From assembly GCA_009859145.1 (NCBI GenBank), contig VRVR01000036.1, positions 93,987 through 157,986 on the forward strand: a DNA stretch of 64,000 bases, given 5' to 3'. The first letter of the stretch is position 1, and the number at the start of each line of letters is the position of its first letter. This document shows, piece by piece, positions 11,326-44,860 of this stretch. The notes beneath the pieces were generated by a model, which was not told where the DNA came from, did not search any database, and worked only from the letters and a program-made list of their open reading frames with translations. Position numbers and translations under genes: made by a program. The DNA is from Andalucia godoyi And28. Taxonomy: Eukaryota > Protista > Jakobida.

Positions 11326-14300
11326 TCATAGCGGACACTTCGACTCGCCGAATTCGGTCTCGGTCTGATGAGAAGGAAGATCAAGGGTCTGCAGTGACGT
11401 CTCGCTTCGCAGATAACGGATGAGAGACGCAAAGAGACGTATTTCGTCGGGGCTCAAATGCTTCCGCAGGGCTTGCATTTCGGACTGAGACATTTTTGAA
11501 AGCGTATTTCCACCAGATGGTCCGCTTTCAGAAGAGAGAAGGGTACTGCTGGACTCGCTATTTGAACCACGGGGTATGAGACTCATTTCCAGATCGGCAT
11601 TCCTTGTCTTTCTGCGCCGCACTCCACCGTCCAACTCTTCCACATTCTGAGCCTCATAGTACTGTGGCTCCATTCGAATGCCTGGATCCGGAGATACAGG
11701 CCCATTGCGAGCTGCATTGCGAGCTGCATTGCGACGGTCAATGAAAAGATGCAACCGCTCGATAATGACGATCGCCACGGAAAACACTGCCCAAAGACCA
11801 CTGGAACTGCCCAACAGCTGCGAGAACAGCTGCAGCAACGAAATCCGAGAAAAGGACGTGATCGACTGCACCGTGGGAGAAACCTGAAAAATGCACTGAA
11901 TTACCACTGGGGACAGGAGGGACGGATCTGTGAAGGAGACTGGTTGGGTCATGGGGGACCGGACAACGTTCGAAACAGTAACCACAACGGCAAGCCCACG
12001 ATCCTCCACTATAGTGGACGTGCCGTGGGCATTGAGATACTCCAGCGGATTCATGCTGCAATCCACGGTGGCCGATTTGACAGAGGAGTTGCGAGAGAAG
12101 AATCGACCGCTGGACGTCAAATCATGCCCTCTGAACGGAGAGGAAGTTGCGTTGACTTCAATACCATTGAATCCCGTGAGATGCGATCCGTTGAAGGTCT
12201 TGATCGACAATTGAATTAAAAACTTGTTCACCGGGGTTGTTGGCAAATCGAAATTAAGGGTAACAAAACAGGAAGGAACGGGCTGCGTCCATCCAAAATC
12301 CACGGAAACAGATTTGTACGAATACGTAAATCTACCCGACAGCAGATGACTGTCATAGTCCAATTCGATCTCTGCAGCACTGCAATTTCCAGAAAATCCG
12401 TACATTGCAAAGAGCAAAGAAAATGACATTGGTTGCTCAAGCACTCCTGTCGAGCTCCGCAAAGCTACAACAGCAAGACTATTGCCGTTGACATAGCCGT
12501 CAGTGAAACTGGTGATCACGACGGGGAGCGCGATTGCGAAGCCAATACTAAACACTCCACCCAGAACAGTCTTCTTTGAGCCTGGCAAATGCACTGGTCG
12601 CAAAAGGTGGCTGCGAGGGAACGCAAAATCGATATCCCTCAGCCACGCCGTAAATTTCGCATGTAATGACTGCGATCCACAAGACCGCAAAACCAAAACG
12701 CATACGGAGAGCAATATCATCAAACAGGCAACGCTCAGCAGCCCGTAGAGAAGCAGCTGGGAGCCAGTGATGGACGAATCGAATGAGCCACCCCCACCAG
12801 CACTCCCAAGGGCAAAACCCGGAGTGCCATCTGTGTGGACAGGAAGGTCTGCTACCCACAACGGAAAAGGTACAGGCGCAAAAGGCGGGCAAAAGAATCC
12901 TGGCGGACAAGCAGAGCAAACTGAGCTTCCATAAGAGCTGGCGTATGTGCCCGAGGGGCAAACGGAACACACTGCATTTCCGACTCCAGAAGCAAATGCA
13001 CCCGGTTGACAAGAGACGCAAGCTGAAGACATGTTTGCAAATGCAAATGTGCCCGGTGAACACGGAAGACAGGAAGACGCCGCACTTGTTGCAGCGAAAT
13101 ATCCAGAACTGCAAACATCGCACTTGTACGTCCCGTAACCACGAGAAAATGTTCCAGAAGTGCACTCAGCACACAGCGAATTCGCTAAATCAGCCCGATG
13201 GCCAGCGGAACAGCCAGAAGCAGCGTAAAACACATGCAGGAATGCATTGTTCGCAACGTCAAACTCGGAAGCAATGATAACTACAAAAGAAGGATCTGCA
13301 GCCTGCAGCACAGTAAGAACTCCCATTGGGCTTCCAGTGGCGAGGATGAGAGATGGCAACAATGCGTATTGGCCATCCAGTAACCCCACTCGAATAACAG
13401 TCGTGTTCAAACGAATCGCACAACCTGAAGAAGCTGCATCACCACAAGACGTACCGATGTACATCGTTGATGACACCGGGTCGATGGATGCAGAAGAGGC
13501 ATAGCCATTGTCCACTGACACCAGTTGAAAAGGAGAAATGAGAGTGTTGGAAAACGTGGACAGCAGGACAGAACCAATGGTCACCACAGATCCGTAAGTA
13601 ACATAGTGCAGTCGATCACCAAGTAGTGGATCGAGTAACATGAAACGAACATCCTGTACTCCAGAAGGCAACAGACAAGAACGCACAACCTTCATGAAGA
13701 ATGGGCTGCCTCGGCGGTAGGACACTTCCACAACATCTGCCGAGAGGAAAACCGTACAATCCCCAGTGATCAAATCGGAGACGCAGAGGTTCCTTGAAAA
13801 GAACACCGACTCGGAGGCGGGATTCACGAGACAACTTCGAAACTGAAACTGCAAGGACGGTGCTGGATGAACTGACCAGGAGCTGGATGCAGATTCGAAA
13901 TACACGTACGCAGGTTGGCCGGTAGTCGCGGACTTCGGCACCCAACCGATCATAACACCATGTGCTGAATCTTGGCATATTACATACGATTGCTTGGAAA
14001 GTGCGGTACCTAGCGGGAAGAACGGCGTAGGGCCTAGCGAGGAACTGCCATACGAGAGCTCACCGCTTGAAACATTGTATTGCGGCATCCCGACACTTGC
14101 CATTGGCGATGCGGAGCCAGAATACTGCACCAACATCGCAGATCCGTTTTGATAGACAGCAAAGGAGAACGCAATTCTAGGATCTGCATTTCCAGCCACA
14201 CGAATCGGCTTGAACGAATACACAGCGCTGTTCGGACCTTGAGGATCCGGATTGAGAACGGTATTCAACGGGAGTGCAGGCTGGCATCCGTCGAACACCG

Positions 14301-15696
14301 AGTCCATAGAAACAATCACGTCGTCCCGAAGAACCCCATTCCGCTGATACATCGACGGCGCCGAAAAATGAAAAACTTGAGAATCGGGAAGATAGAAAAA
14401 AGAAACCAAGCCGAATGACAGCATTGGAAGAGATGAATTCGAAACGGAAACATTGTTGGTGAGCATGCTGATTCTGTAGTCAAACAAACCACGAGGACTC
14501 GGTCCGCAGCCCGTACGAACAAGAAAATGGAAAATCATAGAAGCCTGAAACTGATCATAATAGCCAACGCTGCTGAAAAGCTGCCAAGCTGGCGATCCCC
14601 AATCTATGGTCGCACAGTATGCACACGAAGAACAAAACGACGCAAGAACTTCTCGTTGATAAGGCGGTTGCAAATTCAGGCGTTCAACATTGAAATTCGA
14701 GGAATTAAATGAAGCAACGTAATATAAGAAGCTAGACAAAGAATCCTGGCTGACGACTTGCAAGCTGATGAGTTTGTCGATTGACCTCCCGATATCTAGT
14801 GAATGCGCTGAAGGACTCGAGAAGTTCCATCGAACGGTTTGGTCCAGGGGGTCCAGAGGAACATTGATGTTCACCGTGTACAGGAATGAGGACTTTGTAT
14901 TGAGGATCGTAAACTGCACATCCGTTGACGTTCTTGTGGAGAATACCAGTGCTGGAATTTGTCGGAAGGCCGGGCAACACGGAAACGAGAAGGACGTCGC
15001 GTTCGACTTTGCATACGAAATCACATTTCCTGGAGATGACATCGTTGCGATCTGGAATACCCATAATGTAATAGATGACGAGGGAGCGGATATTAGAGCA
15101 ACAAGCACGCCGGTGCTGGCATCACATGCAATATCGGAGCTTTGATAAGTCAATGACCGGTTTTGTGGAATCTGCAAATTTGACAGCATCCAGGAATTAT
15201 CAGAATCCAACGAGACTGCGCTGAGCGAGGTCGAATACGATTGCACGACAACCAGGTTCTCCGAAACTTTGCACAACTTCTGAGGAAGCAGCGTTCCCAG
15301 GGACAATGGAACTGTTGAATTGCATATTACAAGACCAGGCAAGCAGATCGCAATCAATGCGCTTTCCGACATCGTTCTCCACCTTCCAATCACCCACACC
15401 TGGCTCTTCTCGCGCATCCACACTGCGTACTGAAACGTTCCAAAATCTACATGCGGAACCACAAACGACACTGAGGAGTCGTTCTTGTTCTTCACTCCAA
15501 GCAAAAGGACCGCATCCAACCCCATATAGAGAACCTGATCACCAATGTCTAAGATCGACGGGGGATTCGTAAACCCTTCCAAGACGCTCTCCATCGTTGC
15601 CGACATTCGCGATGGCAGCGAATAGCAAAGATGACGACTCCACCAGCACAGCACACACAGTGCAACAAAGATCCGCACCACAACCTTTGAAAACAT
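11326..15696 (-). CDS. Large secreted/membrane protein with GCC2/GCC3 (ephrin-receptor-like) Cys repeats and several TM helices
   Basis: N-terminal signal peptide, tandem C..G.F......C..C repeats, and hydrophobic segments followed by a cytoplasmic tail. Confidence 0.75.
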   Translation of the reverse strand: MFSKVVVRIFVALCVLCWWSRHLCYSLPSRMSATMESVLEGFTNPPSILDIGDQVLYMGLDAVLLLGVKNKNDSSVSFVVPHVDFGTFQYAVWMREKSQVWVIGRWRTMSESALIAICLPGLVICNSTVPLSLGTLLPQKLCKVSENLVVVQSYSTSLSAVSLDSDNSWMLSNLQIPQNRSLTYQSSDIACDASTGVLVALISAPSSSITLWVFQIATMSSPGNVISYAKSNATSFSFPCCPAFRQIPALVFSTRTSTDVQFTILNTKSSFLYTVNINVPLDPLDQTVRWNFSSPSAHSLDIGRSIDKLISLQVVSQDSLSSFLYYVASFNSSNFNVERLNLQPPYQREVLASFCSSCAYCATIDWGSPAWQLFSSVGYYDQFQASMIFHFLVRTGCGPSPRGLFDYRISMLTNNVSVSNSSLPMLSFGLVSFFYLPDSQVFHFSAPSMYQRNGVLRDDVIVSMDSVFDGCQPALPLNTVLNPDPQGPNSAVYSFKPIRVAGNADPRIAFSFAVYQNGSAMLVQYSGSASPMASVGMPQYNVSSGELSYGSSSLGPTPFFPLGTALSKQSYVICQDSAHGVMIGWVPKSATTGQPAYVYFESASSSWSVHPAPSLQFQFRSCLVNPASESVFFSRNLCVSDLITGDCTVFLSADVVEVSYRRGSPFFMKVVRSCLLPSGVQDVRFMLLDPLLGDRLHYVTYGSVVTIGSVLLSTFSNTLISPFQLVSVDNGYASSASIDPVSSTMYIGTSCGDAASSGCAIRLNTTVIRVGLLDGQYALLPSLILATGSPMGVLTVLQAADPSFVVIIASEFDVANNAFLHVFYAASGCSAGHRADLANSLCAECTSGTFSRGYGTYKCDVCSSGYFAATSAASSCLPCSPGTFAFANMSSACVSCQPGAFASGVGNAVCSVCPSGTYASSYGSSVCSACPPGFFCPPFAPVPFPLWVADLPVHTDGTPGFALGSAGGGGSFDSSITGSQLLLYGLLSVACLMILLSVCVLVLRSCGSQSLHAKFTAWLRDIDFAFPRSHLLRPVHLPGSKKTVLGGVFSIGFAIALPVVITSFTDGYVNGNSLAVVALRSSTGVLEQPMSFSLLFAMYGFSGNCSAAEIELDYDSHLLSGRFTYSYKSVSVDFGWTQPVPSCFVTLNFDLPTTPVNKFLIQLSIKTFNGSHLTGFNGIEVNATSSPFRGHDLTSSGRFFSRNSSVKSATVDCSMNPLEYLNAHGTSTIVEDRGLAVVVTVSNVVRSPMTQPVSFTDPSLLSPVVIQCIFQVSPTVQSITSFSRISLLQLFSQLLGSSSGLWAVFSVAIVIIERLHLFIDRRNAARNAARNGPVSPDPGIRMEPQYYEAQNVEELDGGVRRRKTRNADLEMSLIPRGSNSESSSTLLSSESGPSGGNTLSKMSQSEMQALRKHLSPDEIRLFASLIRYLRSETSLQTLDLPSHQTETEFGESKCPL

Positions 15697-16499
15697 CGGT
15701 GCTGCAGTTCAAAAACGAAAAAAGACGAAAAATGTATTTAAAAAATGTGGGATGCGCAGCTCCACAGGTCAGACTCCCTAGAACATGAAATAACTTTAAA
15801 TTTATGACAATCGCCAATTCAGTTTAAAAAGAAGGAGTCGCAGGGTCGCTGCTGTGGTGAATGGCGACATTCGTCATGGTGGTGGGAAAAAAAAAGACGA
15901 CACTTGCTGTCGGGGAAACGCAGTACGCACAGTGCGCCGCCTGCTACTGGGAGGAAATGTCCGACCCACTCTGTCTCCAGCCCGAAAAAGGACGCGCCCG
16001 ACAATGAGCTGGAGCGGGCTTTGGATTTGCTCCCGGAACTGAACTGGGATTGTTGTGGCGTTTCATCTTTTTTGGAGCTCGGTGCGTGCCGTACAGCCAT
16101 TGGGCGTGACGGGATGGTAGTTCCAGGCATTGCAGTCCGAAGGAAGAACATGGTACTCAGTCGCTTTCATCTGTGTACTGCGTTTCTGTCAGTCATACTG
16201 CACTGCGGTGGACAGTATGCTTTTCGCTGACCTCCTCTTCGAGTAATAGTCAGGGGTACACTTCTGCGACATCCCGCGTTCCTGGGGCGCTGGAGGAAAA
16301 ACAACTGCTTTTTCCGAGTCTCTTTTCAAGGAAAGATCGTGCCGCTTGTGTGGACTCTCGAGCCCTTCCATATGTATGATGCGTGCCATTGTCTTCAAGG
16401 GAGGCTTTCTGACAGTGCACGGTTGGATCGTTTCAAGATGGTGCGAAACGCCTACATTGTACACGAACCACGGATGATCATCGCTGATCACCCATAATC

Positions 16500-16970
16500 A
16501 ATGCTGCAACCCAACAACATGCATAACATGATTGAGGAGAGGGTAGGCCCCGACACGCCCCTCGGCATGAGAGACGTTCCTAAGATAGATGTTGCGCGCG
16601 CCGTTCCAGTCGCGGTCGATCGTGCATTTGCACGATGGGTAACAAAACACACCTTGTTGCCAGATAACTTGCGATGCATTTCCCCGCAACGGCCGCACGT
16701 TTTAGACGTGCACTCCTCCGTCACAAGACACAATCGACACCTACCGCCCCGCGATTTCGCACAATTTTTGCAGAGCATTCGCTGCTGGAATTGAAAATGG
16801 CCCCATGTCAACATCTGCCGCGCAGTTGTCGCCTTGGCGATCTTTCCTGGCGGCGGCCCAGCGCCGGAAGGTATCGGTGGAGATGTCATGGGTCTTGCCG
16901 CAGCGTTGCGGGCGTAGCGGACACGGTGCGTTGCATGGACAATAAAAATAAGAACGAAAATAAGAAATGA
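16500..16970 (-). mobile_element. Internally deleted IS607-like element: TnpA HTH fragment plus Fanzor2 C-terminal fragment (pseudogenised)
   Basis: Across frameshifts it reads MQRTV..TPATLR-THDISTDTFRRWAAA-GKI, then KIAKATTARQMLTWGHFQFQQRMLCK...VTEECTSKTCGRCGEMHRKLSGNKV / FCYPSCKCTIDRDWNGARNIYLRN. Ends are approximate. Confidence 0.85.
16504..16600 (-). ncRNA. Putative Fanzor2 omegaRNA scaffold of relic 1 (probably decayed)
   Basis: Overlaps the end of the Fanzor ORF. The segment gccgaggggcgtgtcggggcctaccctctc is homologous to the equivalent segment of relic 2. Boundaries are inferred. Confidence 0.5.
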
Positions 16971-17370
16971 GCGTCGCTGTGCGAGAATGCAACGCGGCGG
17001 CGTGTTTATAAGGATTTCATGATCAAAATGGGGCGAAACGAATCGGGCATCGTGTGACGGAATTGTCAAGATACCGTAACAAACGCATGCGCATGGCGCG
17101 TGACAGTGTTTTGTTTTCGTGGGCTTTAGACTGATTCATCATATCGCAATAAGTGGCAACGGCATGCTGCTTTGTTTGAGAGTTTCTTTTTGCGATCCCC
17201 CTTCCCCTCCTCTTTTGTGACAACTTGAGGGGCTCCAGAGACGGACAACCCCCCAGAGTTCGGATACTTCTTCAAAGACTAAACAAACTAGTCATTTATC
17301 ATTAAAGAGAGAGAGACCGAGTAATGCCCAAAGAGAGGGAGGGGGGGCAAGTCAAGGAACAAGGGAAAAA

Positions 17371-19026
17371 CTAAACCTTGTACAGGTTTGCCATGAATTG
17401 CACAATGAAGGAGCTCACAGCCTTCGCTGGCATCTTCGTTGACGCACCATAGATGGCGGCCAGACCTTCACGAAATTCTTCCGGATGACTCTTGTAGCGC
17501 TCAACAACCTCTTTGAGATCTCGGATGAAATCCGCGTAGTGGTCGACCTGCCGAGCGGTAACGGTGCAGTGCAACGACGCCGGCAGTTGCTGACGCTCGA
17601 GATGCCATCCCTTCTTGGACAAGCCGTCGCCGATCGCAAGAATATCAAACGTATCGGAACCAATTGCAAAGATGCACGTCTCGGGCTGGGCAACAACATG
17701 CAGTCCATCAATTGAGTTCACGGCATCTTGAAGAGCTTTGGTTGTCTTCATAATGTCGGCTGCGAGCGCAAGGTATCCATTCTCCCCCATTGCAATCATA
17801 GATGCCCATGCAGTCGCCACTAATCCACCTGGACGAGATCCTGCTGCAGCTGGAGATCCGTAGAGGCCACCGGGCCATGTCGTGATCGTGAAAAACTGGT
17901 GATTCCGGAGATCCGGAGATCGGTAAACGATAACGGACGCGCCCTTCGCAGCGTAACCGTACTTGTGGACGTCGGCAGACATGGAAGTCACGCCAGGGTT
18001 ACGGAAGTCAAACACGGGCATTGGATAGCCCAGCTTTTCAATCCAGGGGACGATGAAGCCGCCAAGACAGCCATCTACGTGCATCGGAATTCCTCGCTTA
18101 CGTGCGATTTCTGACATTTCCGGGATCGGGTCCACGACACCGTGTGGATACTGCGGTGCGGACCCGACAATGCAGATCGTGTTCTTTGAAATTGCTTTTT
18201 CAAGGGCGGAAAGATCACACTTTTTGGAAATCTCGTTGACTGGGACATAAATTATTTTGATGCCGAAGTAATGCGCCCCTTTCGCGAGCGCAGGGTGTGC
18301 AGTAATCGGCATGACTGCCTCTGGACGGGTGATTCCCTTGATAGCCGCTGCGTAATCACGATAGGTCTTGAGCGCCATCATCAGAGACTCGGTGCCGCCA
18401 GACGTCATCGTCCCGCAGGCATCCTCTGGGCCATGGAGCATGCTCGCAGTCATGCGAACAACCTGCGCCTCCATCACCTGGACAGAAGGAAACGCCGAAG
18501 TGTGAAGAGGATTTGTGGACGAGAATGCTGCATAGACCTTGTTCATGAAGTCAACATGTTCTTCGCCTCCGTGGTAGACAAAACCGAATGCACGACCGTG
18601 TTGCCAGTCGCAGTCGTACTCAATGAACTTGCGCATTGTCGCTAAGAGTTCATTTCGGTCTACTCCGACCTCGGGGATCTTGGTATGGCGAGGAACGATT
18701 GTGCGCGACTGCGTAACTCCGTCAGCTTCAGCGTCATCGGCAGCATGAGATGCTTCCGCTTTGCTGAATGCTTTGTTCATCTTTTCAATCATTTTGGAAT
18801 TCTCCTTTGCGATCAGCGCTGCTCCTCCCGGAACACGGGATACTGCGAAATATCCAAAATCCTTCAGCGCAGGAAGCGGATTCAACACCGAAAGGCCTTC
18901 TGGCGACGACAGAACCTTGGACACCGCATAGAGAGCCGCAAGCGATCCGGCTCCAAGAGAAAACGACTTTGGGTCCACATCGCGAACTAAATCACGGACC
19001 ATATCCACTACAGTGTTGTGCGACAT
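17371..19026 (-). CDS. SGPL1: Sphingosine-1-phosphate lyase
   Basis: TNPLHTSAFP, GTMTSGGTESLMMA, HPALAKGAHYF, MHVDGCLGGF and PLP-lysine motif SADVHKYGYA. Confidence 0.95.
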   Translation of the reverse strand: MSHNTVVDMVRDLVRDVDPKSFSLGAGSLAALYAVSKVLSSPEGLSVLNPLPALKDFGYFAVSRVPGGAALIAKENSKMIEKMNKAFSKAEASHAADDAEADGVTQSRTIVPRHTKIPEVGVDRNELLATMRKFIEYDCDWQHGRAFGFVYHGGEEHVDFMNKVYAAFSSTNPLHTSAFPSVQVMEAQVVRMTASMLHGPEDACGTMTSGGTESLMMALKTYRDYAAAIKGITRPEAVMPITAHPALAKGAHYFGIKIIYVPVNEISKKCDLSALEKAISKNTICIVGSAPQYPHGVVDPIPEMSEIARKRGIPMHVDGCLGGFIVPWIEKLGYPMPVFDFRNPGVTSMSADVHKYGYAAKGASVIVYRSPDLRNHQFFTITTWPGGLYGSPAAAGSRPGGLVATAWASMIAMGENGYLALAADIMKTTKALQDAVNSIDGLHVVAQPETCIFAIGSDTFDILAIGDGLSKKGWHLERQQLPASLHCTVTARQVDHYADFIRDLKEVVERYKSHPEEFREGLAAIYGASTKMPAKAVSSFIVQFMANLYKV

Positions 19027-19381
19027 TGTCAAGGAAGGAAGTAGTAGCAATTATAACAATCGTTAAGCACCGCTTGGAAGACACCACACAACAACAACAG
19101 CGAAGGAGGCGAAGAAGAAGAAAAGAAGTCGGGAATAGTGTTGCTGCGAAAGAAGTGAGTCGTGTGATGGAGTTTCCGGATTCCGTCGGCACCGACTCGA
19201 AGTCCTCTCAGAGTTCCGACGGAGAGAGGGGGAAGTGGAGTACGGCAGTTTATAACTTTCCGAATTTTTGATTCGGGAAAACGGCATGACACGACGGCAC
19301 AATGGCAAGCGGCGAATGGCGAATGGCGAATGGTACGTCCAGTGTCCGAACCAGGAAGCGAGGTAGAACTGCGAAATTTTA

Positions 19382-19412
<31 letters not shown>

Positions 19413-19419
19413 AGAGGAA

Positions 19420-20100
19420 TTACTGGTGGTGATCACCCTTGAGCAAAAGCTTGAACTTCGTATCAAGATCATGCAGTTCATATTCAAGAGCCTTCTTATC
19501 AGCCTCTTGGACGACAGAAAGCTTTTTGAGCTGTCGCAGCGCATAGAGATCGGATCGGATCTGCGCCATCCTTTCATGGACCTTTCGTGCTTCCGGTGTC
19601 AGTCTACGGACCTTTGCGTCTGCTCCCGACGACTTCCACATGGACGCCGCACGAATTGCAATGGAGATCTTACCCCAGCGTCGCTTTGCTTCCGTCTTTT
19701 GGGGCATGGTGGATCGCAATTTCACCATCTCTTCCCTAAAGCTCCTTGCCTCTGCTTTTCTGGTTCGCAGAAGCACGTTTTCATTCTTTTCGAGCTCGTG
19801 AATAAGAGCACTGATCTGAGCCTTCTTCTCTGCATTCGAAAGAGCTCCGTTCGCCCGAACTGCCAGAAGCTCTGTTCGCAGCTCTGCATCTCTCTTTTCA
19901 AGATTCGCAAGCGCCAGCTCAAGTTGCAAGAGATCAGGGCCGACTACAGAATTTTCACGAGCCAATGGTCGAGCTTCTCCTGCTCCTGCTCCTGATTCTG
20001 CCAGTGTCGACGTTGCCACTGCTGAGCTGTCGTCCTGTGCACTCTCTTCCAACAGATGCACGCGGGACCGGGCAGTGTCCGTATCGACCGTTAAAGACAT
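19420..20100 (-). CDS. Uncharacterised coiled-coil protein
   Basis: 226-codon ORF rich in heptads (LELALANLEKRDAELRTEL...); no family recognised. Confidence 0.6.
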   Translation of the reverse strand: MSLTVDTDTARSRVHLLEESAQDDSSAVATSTLAESGAGAGEARPLARENSVVGPDLLQLELALANLEKRDAELRTELLAVRANGALSNAEKKAQISALIHELEKNENVLLRTRKAEARSFREEMVKLRSTMPQKTEAKRRWGKISIAIRAASMWKSSGADAKVRRLTPEARKVHERMAQIRSDLYALRQLKKLSVVQEADKKALEYELHDLDTKFKLLLKGDHHQ

Positions 20101-25884: not shown

Positions 25885-26340
25885 TTTCGATGGCAGCTCA
25901 TCTGATTTGCTGTTTTATTAACATCATTGACAGTAGCATTTATCTGGACACCATTTTCTGTCTTGAGGCGTTTTATGAAATTTCCGGTCGTTCCGGACAT
26001 TACCATGTCCGTTTCTGAGATGTCTGTTTTGATCCCTTGCTGCGCGGTGTGCACACTTGCTTTCAATCAGCGAGGCACATGCAGAGAGTCAAAAAAAAAA
26101 AGTCATCTTTGCTGCCATTGAGGATCCACTGTTGTGTTTCCTGCTCTTGCATAAGCACGGCAGCATGAAAAATGGGCTGTGGGTTTGGACTGCTGGGAAG
26201 AAGAGCGCGTGCCCCAACACGTCGTTTTCTGGTAACGCATGCATTGTACACGAAGCATGGCAAATGATTGCTGAGCCTCCACATCAAGTCTTCCATCCAA
26301 CACCAAACGAAACCAAATGTGAATTCAATTCAGAAGTGAC

Positions 26341-43186: not shown

Positions 43187-44461
43187 CTATCCTTTCGTGG
43201 AGAACACTGTTAAGTTTAGTGATCCCAATATTTTCCCTACTACAAGAATCTCATCTCGACCTCGTGATCCATTTTCTAAAAGGGACCACCAACAGGTTGG
43301 TATCCAATCTGTGCCAAACGCTGCTCCACACATAGCTGCTACTAGTGTCGGGGAGCCAGGTGTTGTGGAAAGCTCCCGAACACTGTCGCAAATGCACAGT
43401 TCCGGAGATGAATAGTTGAATTCTTCAAACTTTCGAACAGCATTCTGAACAGCTCTTCCAATTGCGGAATCATTGGACTTTTCATAGTTGTGAAGATCGA
43501 TTTTCTTGTTCAGAATAAGGTCTTTCAATACGACAACATACAAGACTGCGGCTTCCAGAATTTGATTGTTTGCCCCGCAGATGGGTGCCAGCGCTGCGCG
43601 AACAACCTCAAATAGAACTCGAGGTGGTGCATTACGGTACACAAATGCCAATGGCGCACACCGCAGGACGGCTGATATTGCGAACGGTAGGTCATGTTCC
43701 TTGTTTGTGTCCGCGGAGACTATGTCCGCTGTCTTTGCGAGTTTTAAGAGCAATGCTGCCATGTATTTTGAATATCCTCTTGGTGGGGAATAAAACTCAG
43801 CGTATTTCTTCGCGACGCTGTTCATTTCGAGTCTTTGTCGTTCTGCAATTGAAAATGCAACCGCCAGCATCTGTTCTGTTCTGTCTGTGTACTTGGCGAA
43901 TTTCCACGTTTTTTTCGCGTATGGTGGATAAGCGTCTGATTGTTGAAAAGTTTCGAGATTGCGGAATGTGCAATAAAGGCTGCCGTATGCTTTTTCTATG
44001 CTCCTTTGATTCCAACCGTCCACCGGCGCCTCCAGAATGTCTGCGCAGGCCACGCTCAGTAGTATTCCGCAAGCTTTAGATTGTTCGTCGTTTTGCATCT
44101 TCATGGAAGGTGTCGCGGAAGAGGCATATAAACTGGATTTGAGCCACCTGACAGTTTCAGAATCATCTGTTTCCCCATTGTTTCGCAGTGGGTTCGAGGA
44201 CCATTCAACAAGCCAGTAACAGTAGTCATGAATGTCCCTCCCCGATCGGACGGTCTTCAGTGAAGGACAAGACTTTGGGCCTTGGCAGAAATCAACAGCC
44301 ATATAATTGCTTTTTGGGGCACCAGCGTACTTTTTGGAGTTGGAGGAAAACAGAAATGGAGCAAGGAAGACGTATCCATCGGTCATTTTTTTCTTCGCAG
44401 TGTCGAAGGGAACGGTTTTCTGAGCTGTTTGCTGCGGCTGTGGAAAGAACCTGCTGTACAT
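43187..44461 (-). CDS. ADP-ribosylglycohydrolase-like protein with degenerate metal-binding motifs and extra N-terminal region
   Basis: ACADILEAPVDGW, YTDRTEQMLAVA, RGYS, VLRCAPLA and LVAAMCGAAFG..WIP..W...LEN. Start at 44461 is assumed. Confidence 0.75.
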   Translation of the reverse strand: MYSRFFPQPQQTAQKTVPFDTAKKKMTDGYVFLAPFLFSSNSKKYAGAPKSNYMAVDFCQGPKSCPSLKTVRSGRDIHDYCYWLVEWSSNPLRNNGETDDSETVRWLKSSLYASSATPSMKMQNDEQSKACGILLSVACADILEAPVDGWNQRSIEKAYGSLYCTFRNLETFQQSDAYPPYAKKTWKFAKYTDRTEQMLAVAFSIAERQRLEMNSVAKKYAEFYSPPRGYSKYMAALLLKLAKTADIVSADTNKEHDLPFAISAVLRCAPLAFVYRNAPPRVLFEVVRAALAPICGANNQILEAAVLYVVVLKDLILNKKIDLHNYEKSNDSAIGRAVQNAVRKFEEFNYSSPELCICDSVRELSTTPGSPTLVAAMCGAAFGTDWIPTCWWSLLENGSRGRDEILVVGKILGSLNLTVFSTKG

Positions 44462-44489
44462 TTTCCCTCGCACACCTTCGCCTATATTA

Positions 44490-44860
44490 TACACGGAACA
44501 TGCATATCTACGAATAGACATGCATAATCAGTCTTGCATCCCGTTGCCGGGAAGAGGATATGCCCCCCAACACGCCTCACGGCGCTCTTCAGATAGATGT
44601 TCCGCGCTCCGCTCCCAGTCTCGATCAATCTGTGAGCCACTTTCTCAGCGTGACACGTTGTTCCTGAGAAGGGTGCATTTTTTGATGCTGACGGCCCTAG
44701 CAGCAGGCGCTTTCGTGTCCTCAGTTGCAGCACTGGAGCTACGAGAGGAAGAGGCGGTAGGCGTAGTGACACGTGGTCTCTTAGGAGGTCTGCGGGACCT
44801 AGGAGGCCCTGGCATCGGGCGGCGTAGGCGAATGCGTCATCCCAGCGAACTCACGCCCAT
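44490..44860 (-). mobile_element. Internally deleted Fanzor2 element (N-terminus joined to last RuvC motif) with downstream structured end
   Basis: MPGPPRSRRPPKRPRVTT...ARAVSIK-MHPSQEQRVTLRKWL, then IDRDW-GARNIYLK, with frameshifts. Ends are approximate. Confidence 0.8.
44495..44610 (-). ncRNA. Putative Fanzor2 omegaRNA scaffold of relic 2
   Basis: Follows the RNIYLK codons, shares a motif with relic 1, and has a GCAA-capped hairpin (44540-44551) and an 11-bp UUCG-capped hairpin (44500-44525). Confidence 0.65.

Follow-up and report, generated by a model that had tools for sequence, protein, structure and literature searches.

Within the TnpB-Cas12 lineage, the eukaryotic branch is made up of Fanzor2/IS607 elements, which attract interest as compact genome editors. 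The jakobids branch deeply and are known mainly for their bacteria-like mitochondria. Fanzor2 has been described in giant viruses, amoebae, molluscs, algae and the discoban Naegleria (PMC10432273; PMC3627910), and neither jakobids nor Andalucia are mentioned in the Fanzor papers and supplements examined. Here we report on a 64-kb stretch of the nuclear genome of the jakobid Andalucia godoyi And28 (contig VRVR01000036.1, positions 93,987 to 157,986; hereafter the window, in whose own coordinates all positions are given). Its minus-strand segment 17040-16433 probably represents what decay and internal deletion have left of a eukaryotic IS607-type transposon copy that once encoded a TnpA recombinase and Fanzor2, an RNA-guided nuclease that cuts DNA. 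The kind of element has already been described; it is the host lineage that is new, since Andalucia is absent from those papers and supplements.

The closest described systems are the Fanzor2 nucleases of IS607-type elements, such as that of ISvMimi_1 (mimivirus L79, equivalent to ApmFz2; PDB 9b0l) and NlovFz2 of Naegleria lovaniensis. The locus under study (relic 1) has the same RuvC/zinc-ribbon C-terminus with the alternative glutamate, and the likeness extends to a DPG-type RuvC-I motif in its paralogues, a linkage to IS607 TnpA in its relatives, a length of about 500 amino acids in the full-length relatives and a structured RNA module on the 3' side. On the other hand, relic 1 differs from these systems in being a pseudogene of ~0.5 kb without the WED, REC and RuvC-I regions, and in its jakobid host. 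A similar comparison can be drawn with the IS607-family TnpA proteins (IS607, IS1535; PMC6188088). Relic 1 shares with them a putative MerR-like helix-turn-helix pattern, [VI]S..T[LF]R.W...GKI, its paralogues share the C-terminal helix motif, and the probable right end of the relic (...TAGG) would fit the GG crossover dinucleotide, whereas the absence of the catalytic domain and the presence of a flanking 18-nucleotide (nt) direct repeat set relic 1 apart.

Relic 1 occupies 16936-16498 of the minus strand, and its coding sequence is interrupted by three small insertions. The first segment, MQRTVSATPATLR (16936-16898), begins with an ATG at 16936 and is followed by a surplus C at 16897 and the segment KTHDISTDTFRRWAAA (16896-16849), and then by a surplus A at 16848 and the segment GKIAKATTARQMLTWGHFQFQQRMLCKNCAKSRGGRCRLCLVTEECTSKTCGRCGEMHRKLSGNKV (16847-16650). 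The third insertion, two nucleotides long (TG within GTGTG, 16649-16648), falls inside the zinc finger; beyond it lies FCYPSCKCTIDRDWNGARNIYLRN (16647-16576), and the frame stays open to the stop codon at 16500-16498, the complete peptide from 16647 to this stop being FCYPSCKCTIDRDWNGARNIYLRNVSHAEGRVGAYPLLNHVMHVVGLQH. In terms of content, the 5' part (16839-16936) is a putative tnpA start codon with a helix-turn-helix remnant (MQRTVSATPATLR, KTHDISTDTFRRWAAA and GKI), recognized in the sequence and by a TnpA hidden Markov model (HMM) and broken at 16897 and 16848. Fanzor2 fragment A (16650-16847) comprises the joint KIAKA-TTARQ, the helix TARQMLTWGHFQFQQ, the alternative RuvC-II glutamate (GAG, 16718-16716) and the first CxxC of the zinc finger (16697-16686). 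Fragment B (16498-16647), on the other side of the TG insertion, carries the second zinc knuckle, the RuvC-III motif DRDWNGARNIY (16617-16585) and the C-terminal tail AEGRVGAYPL. What survives would be the first ~30 codons of tnpA and the last ~115 codons of Fanzor2, directly fused by a deletion; the WED, REC and RuvC-I regions are missing.

The preliminary description of this locus had reported minus-strand peptides in three overlapping frames (16936-16576), a frameshift near 16650, and a dead copy lacking both RuvC-I and the recombinase catalytic domain. All of this was borne out: the peptides can be read in the sequence as described, in tblastn the matches of every relative switch frame exactly at 16650, RuvC-I is deleted, and the six-frame translation of the window contains no match to the recombinase catalytic domain. 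The zinc finger of the form CxxC..CxxC, also claimed there, held up only by half. Its first CxxC is present, but the third ligand is substituted in relic 1 (VFCYPSC, with TAC at 16641-16639, versus VFCCPxC in relatives), and because of this mutated ligand the finger is not intact. Relic 1 was in this way confirmed as a dead copy of ~0.5 kb which, as judged from its sequence, would have no function of its own: with the recombinase catalytic domain and the WED, REC and RuvC-I regions lost, and with three small insertions and one zinc-ligand substitution in what is left, it would neither move nor cut. A functional, domesticated zinc-finger protein derived from Fanzor2 could in principle be encoded by the 193-codon frame at 16488-17069, a single frame that is indeed open from 17069 to 16488. 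However, the RuvC-III part is misread in this frame and comes out as noise (CFVTHRANARSTATG), the homology changes frame at 16650, a zinc ligand is lost, and the open reading frames (ORFs) of relic 1 are absent from the annotated protein collection, all of which makes a live gene at this place exceedingly improbable.

The assignment of the C-terminal part to Fanzor2 is strongly supported by several sequence comparisons, whose matches go beyond what chance would give. The stitched C-terminal peptide matched the Pfam family PF07282 (Cas12f1-like TNB, zinc ribbon) with 40.2 bits (E 3.7e-10), well above the cut-off of 26.3, and gave sub-threshold matches to the NCBIfam models guided_TnpB and IS607_TnpB. 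A search of 5.8 billion proteins returned 29 homologues of the relic 1 Fanzor2 peptide (the best one, a metagenomic protein, at E 3.3e-28 and 62% identity), and an exhaustive HMMER profile search yielded 2382 cluster representatives at E<=1e-30, with full-length members of 450-680 amino acids (aa). When the family profile was compared with solved structures in PDB, the mimivirus L79/Fanzor2 (9b0l) came out on top with 111.8 bits (E 2.4e-31), far ahead of UnCas12m (74 bits) and ISDra2 TnpB (44 bits). Yoon et al. (PMC10711439) defined Fanzor proteins by a DPG-type RuvC-I motif together with an alternative RuvC-II glutamate that precedes the zinc finger by six residues. In relic 1 six residues lie between the glutamate encoded at 16718-16716 and the first zinc cysteine (16697-16695), a distance of seven positions, and the corresponding column (E-x2-TSKTC) is invariant across 24 family members; the relocated glutamate that the preliminary description had pointed out is fully in line with the published definition. 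The RuvC-III core DRDWNGARNI is likewise kept (16617-16588). The DPG motif itself is deleted from relic 1, which for this reason counts as a dead remnant of Fanzor2 and no longer as a working nuclease; the motif is found, as ALDPGVRTF, in the A. godoyi paralogues ANDGO_08534 and ANDGO_03800, in the relative L083 and in all full-length relatives examined.

The nature of the N-terminal piece was addressed with a TnpA profile made of 70 sequences from closer, co-directional relatives, which superseded an earlier profile of 11 sequences. Out of 2090 peptides from the six-frame translation of the window, this HMM placed the stitched N-peptide first (15.9 bits, E 5.8e-4); the match covers the helix-turn-helix positions (...lGVSekTLrrWakeGKI...) and shows exactly the TnpA spacing of three residues between W and GKI. 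The same N-terminus is common to relic 1 and to paralogues that include ANDGO_03800 and ANDGO_07725. In ANDGO_03800 and ANDGO_07725 it continues, in the right order, into the TnpA C-terminal motif (siitvFsarlnGlRkykk), to which ANDGO_03800 matched with 13.7-15.6 bits (E 0.002); the serine-recombinase catalytic core is deleted in both of them, as it is in relic 1. An hhalign comparison of the A. godoyi N-termini with the 70 TnpA sequences returned a probability of 89% (E 2e-6), and none of 3000 composition-matched shuffles reached the 15.9-bit score, the 6.9 bits obtained with a single frame correction (see below) or the scores of the paralogues.

The gene neighbourhoods of the relatives point in the same direction. 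An IS607-type TnpA is present at 89 of the 163 related loci. At 52 of them, the closest relatives of relic 1 included, tnpA runs in the same direction as Fanzor2, whose WED motif starts at the TnpA stop; in one of the TnpA neighbours, used as a reference, both the Resolvase and the MerR domain were confirmed. The nearest more complete relative is L083 (Logan contig SRR28211851, 1286 bp), which extends from the WED motif to the C-terminus with a single frameshift. Given the TnpA C-terminal motif in the paralogues with the common N-terminus and the presence of tnpA at 89 of the 163 loci, the 5' region of the repeat family is best read as tnpA with a deleted catalytic core, of which relic 1 would retain the first ~30 codons. 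This assignment is supported, less strongly than that of the Fanzor2 part.

Two further features of the relatives may be mentioned here. The L083 match (L083:21-1275) is 62% identical to relic 1 and shares the motif LN[IL]KALRALLLNS with ANDGO_07725; the contig stops 11 nt past the stop codon, short of any 3' module. In the 52 co-directional elements, which come from giant-virus and metagenome contigs (L003-L163; e.g. L012:3911-5657 and L003:3950-5582), the Fanzor2 frame is open across tnpA (median length ~590 nt), lies in the +1 frame in every case and contains conserved motifs (PFW..LWLPT..SWFS), which suggests an N-terminal extension of Fanzor2 overprinted on the recombinase gene.

Relic 1 is one of several copies. 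The window contains two more, found by tblastn and DNA searches, both on the same strand and intergenic. Relic 2 (44479-44860) belongs to a different subfamily, with ANDGO_01483 as its paralogue. It opens with a K/R-rich stretch resembling a nuclear localization signal (PPKRPRV, ~44836-44700), followed by the WED N-motif KMHPSQEQRVTLRKWL (44681-44634; 19 bits, E 6.8e-5 with a WED-N profile against the whole window), an internal deletion with frameshifted RuvC-III remnants (QIDRDW / GARNIYLK, 44655-44554), a first hairpin (44529-44496) and a terminal motif (44495-44479). Relic 3 (26236-26310) consists of the 3' module only: its hairpin 1 spans 26285-26253, and its terminal motif 26252-26236. 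Eight long ORFs of the window match exactly proteins that only EukProt contains, and within EukProt relic 1 has no relatives other than ANDGO_08534, ANDGO_01483, ANDGO_03800 and ANDGO_07725, which identifies the window as nuclear DNA of A. godoyi. The repeat family comprises the three relics described here together with four or more annotated pseudo-ORFs at other sites of the nuclear genome; the earlier suggestion that this genome hosts or hosted such an element is supported. Several lesions are common to separate loci, namely the joint KIA[K/E]ATTARQ in relic 1 and ANDGO_03800, the TnpA core deletion in ANDGO_03800 and ANDGO_07725, and the DRDW/GARNI frameshift in relic 2 and ANDGO_01483. Copies that were already defective would therefore appear to have multiplied, either by mobilization in trans or by duplication.

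The same set of copies bears on the question whether the relics derive from a giant-virus genome that became integrated and not from a cellular transposon. IMG/VR giant-virus contigs account for 80 of the related loci, the context of one of the related loci (L001) looks viral, and the published A. godoyi assembly (20 Mb, compact and intron-poor) omitted subtelomeric scaffolds described as "transposon/viral-like" (PMC7050145). Against this, the relics are 0.1-0.6 kb long and stand singly between ordinary host genes with no other viral gene nearby, the several dispersed copies have lesions and a terminal motif in common, and where such genes occur in the viruses themselves, they represent IS607 insertions that carry a TnpA of their own. 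We consider a viral origin of this kind very unlikely and retain the interpretation of the relics as remains of an IS607-type transposon.

A compact module follows the coding remnant at its 3' side. In relic 1 it starts with hairpin 1 (16466-16499, minus strand; 14-15 bp with a GCGA loop), which begins at the stop codon, and continues with the terminal motif CGTGTACAATGTAGGCG (16449-16465), which forms hairpin 2 and ends in ...TAGG. The terminal motif CGTGTAYAATRNAKGCG is present in all three relics (3 observed versus 0.15 expected by chance), and it probably marks the right end of the element, because clear similarity among the three relics stops there. Relics 1 and 2 both have the ...TAGG end, and terminal inverted repeats were not observed. 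The RNAalifold consensus is a module of ~50 nt with a 14-bp hairpin starting from the stop codon and a 6-bp terminal hairpin; six pairs are changed on both sides, 93% of the cells are paired, and none of 500 shuffles equals this result. Owing to G-U pairs the fold is strand-specific, with energies of -28.2, -23.0 and -17.0 kcal/mol for the sense strand of the relics and about -10 for the antisense. No match to the module pattern was found in metagenome contigs, Rfam at gathering thresholds gave nothing in the window, and a scan for bacterial-type promoters and terminators produced nothing beyond chance. The terminal RNA module of A. godoyi also differs from the tails of the viral and metagenomic relatives, which contain no motif similar to it; with the viral tails there is no sequence similarity. 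Its position and fold are consistent with its being, probably, a remnant of the right-end guide-RNA (reRNA/omegaRNA) scaffold.

A number of observations weigh against the interpretation of the locus as an IS607-type TnpA/Fanzor2 copy, and they concern the 3' module, the ends, the parent element and the TnpA assignment. The structural evidence for the 3' module comes from three sequences only, and the fold of relic 3 is no better than that of its shuffles. At the left side, the sequences upstream of relics 1 and 2 resemble each other no more than shuffles do, leaving the left end undefined. Relic 1 is also flanked by an 18-nt direct repeat, CGTTTCGCCCCATTTTGA (17023-17040, minus strand, 87 nt before the ATG) and CGTTTCGCACCATCTTGA (16433-16450, minus strand, abutting the right end), with 16 of 18 bases identical and a score that none of 500 shuffles reached. 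Transposition of IS607 produces no target duplication (PMC6188088), and a repeat of this kind is unexpected for an IS607 insertion. Relics 2 and 3 have no comparable one, and a comparison of the two ends in 56 related elements gave none either. Since part of it recurs, with gaps, in relic 3, the repeat could be sequence of the left and right ends; it could also be a duplicated target or the footprint of a different route of insertion. Furthermore, no intact parent element was seen among the copies found.

As to TnpA, Pfam found no helix-turn-helix in the N-terminal piece, its MerR and HTH_17 models do not reach this piece, and neither the first TnpA profile (11 divergently oriented giant-virus TnpAs) nor the first hhalign run gave any support. 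The assignment is based on ~30 residues, and the top score depends on two frame corrections picked with the hypothesis in mind; with only the frameshift at 16897 mended, the score of the N-piece drops to 6.9 bits (E 0.34). No recombinase catalytic remnant is found in the six-frame translation of the entire window. In addition, the "KI" of GKI is also part of the Fanzor2 segment SKIAKA in the paralogues, and because of this coincidence the GKI point is probably a deletion joint, possibly formed via microhomology. The gene models of ANDGO_03800 and ANDGO_07725, which run from the shared N-terminus straight into Fanzor2 sequence, were a further ground for doubting TnpA at first.

Taken at face value, the negative Pfam, profile and hhalign results, the low score with one corrected frame and the shared KI would fit a relic of Fanzor2 alone, whose N-piece is the Fanzor2 N-terminus or an unrelated 5' sequence and whose resemblance to xTLRRWxxxGKI is due to chance and the deletion joint; relic 2, which opens with a Fanzor2 N-extension and WED motif and has no trace of TnpA, fits it as well. 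However, a profile of 121 WED-N segments (PF12323-like) misses both the N-piece of relic 1 and its paralogues, the reason for which the piece was rejected as a Fanzor2 WED N-motif. The paralogues with the same N-terminus run into the TnpA C-terminal motif, the W-GKI spacing is exactly that of TnpA, and tnpA lies directly upstream in most close relatives. We regard the Fanzor2-only alternative as unlikely. The helix-turn-helix of an IS607 TnpA, as first proposed for this locus, is accordingly favoured by the 70-sequence HMM, the paralogues and the neighbours, albeit moderately, while Pfam and the first profile contributed nothing to it. A hand-built composite peptide matched MerR with only 13 bits (E 0.09) and was not used as evidence, and an AlphaFold2 model of ANDGO_07725 made from 3 sequences (pLDDT, the predicted local distance difference test score, 55.6; one long helix) was uninformative.

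The homology, the lesions, the multiplicity of the copies and the conservation of the RNA fold are direct observations; the ancestral gene order, the guide-RNA role of the 3' module and the past mobility of the element are what we infer. The ancestor of the family of IS607-type relics would have carried, on one strand, a gene for a TnpA serine recombinase, then a gene for the Fanzor2 nuclease and then, at the right end, the guide-RNA scaffold. A deletion would have fused the tnpA start to the C-terminal part of Fanzor2, leaving the 3' module in place at the end, and defective copies may then have been duplicated or mobilized in trans. In this respect the relics resemble non-autonomous DNA transposon derivatives of the MITE (miniature inverted-repeat transposable element) type, in which both ends are likewise kept, the middle is lost and deletion joints are common to several copies; they differ from these in their low number (three in 64 kb and four annotated elsewhere) and in having no inverted repeats, and their mobilization in trans is only a proposal. 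A bolder version of the scenario is that the relics form a MITE-like non-autonomous family, which went on multiplying after the loss of the recombinase core and most of the nuclease, with the 5' start and the 3' guide-RNA module retained. Intact copies in the unassembled subtelomeric scaffolds would have mobilized the relics and possibly still read them as guide-RNA donors, the 18-nt repeat being the footprint of an insertion by a route other than classical IS607 serine recombination; we put this forward as a tentative and rather doubtful possibility.

The described relics would add jakobids to the host range of Fanzor2/IS607 elements, and they show that even a compact 20-Mb genome holds several decayed copies between housekeeping genes. 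The subtelomeric scaffolds left outside the published assembly are where an intact nuclease and guide scaffold might lie, and the two-hairpin terminal module could serve as a starting model for the guide RNA. The shared lesions, in turn, suggest a spread of defective copies, which bears on the persistence of such elements in eukaryotes.

Relic 2 also touches a neighbouring gene. The ORF at 43187-44521, for which EukProt has the same start, encodes a 444-aa protein whose ATG lies inside hairpin 1 of the relic. The first 20 codons of this protein (MSIRRYACSVYNIGEGVRGK) are transposon-tail sequence (44461-44521, minus strand), and the next in-frame ATG follows 60 nt further on. This leaves two readings, an over-extended gene model or a gene start supplied by relic 2.

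Elsewhere in the window, the minus strand at 11326-15696 contains an ORF of 1456 aa whose product starts in the manner of a signal peptide, contains Cys-rich repeats and has membrane segments in its C-terminal part. The AT skew is strong in this region, with values up to 0.29 in the 12-16 kb bins of the composition profile. Between the genes at 17371-19050 and 19420-20100 lies a run of CAT/ATG trinucleotides (~19380-19413), translated as His9 from the plus strand and as Met10 from the minus strand.

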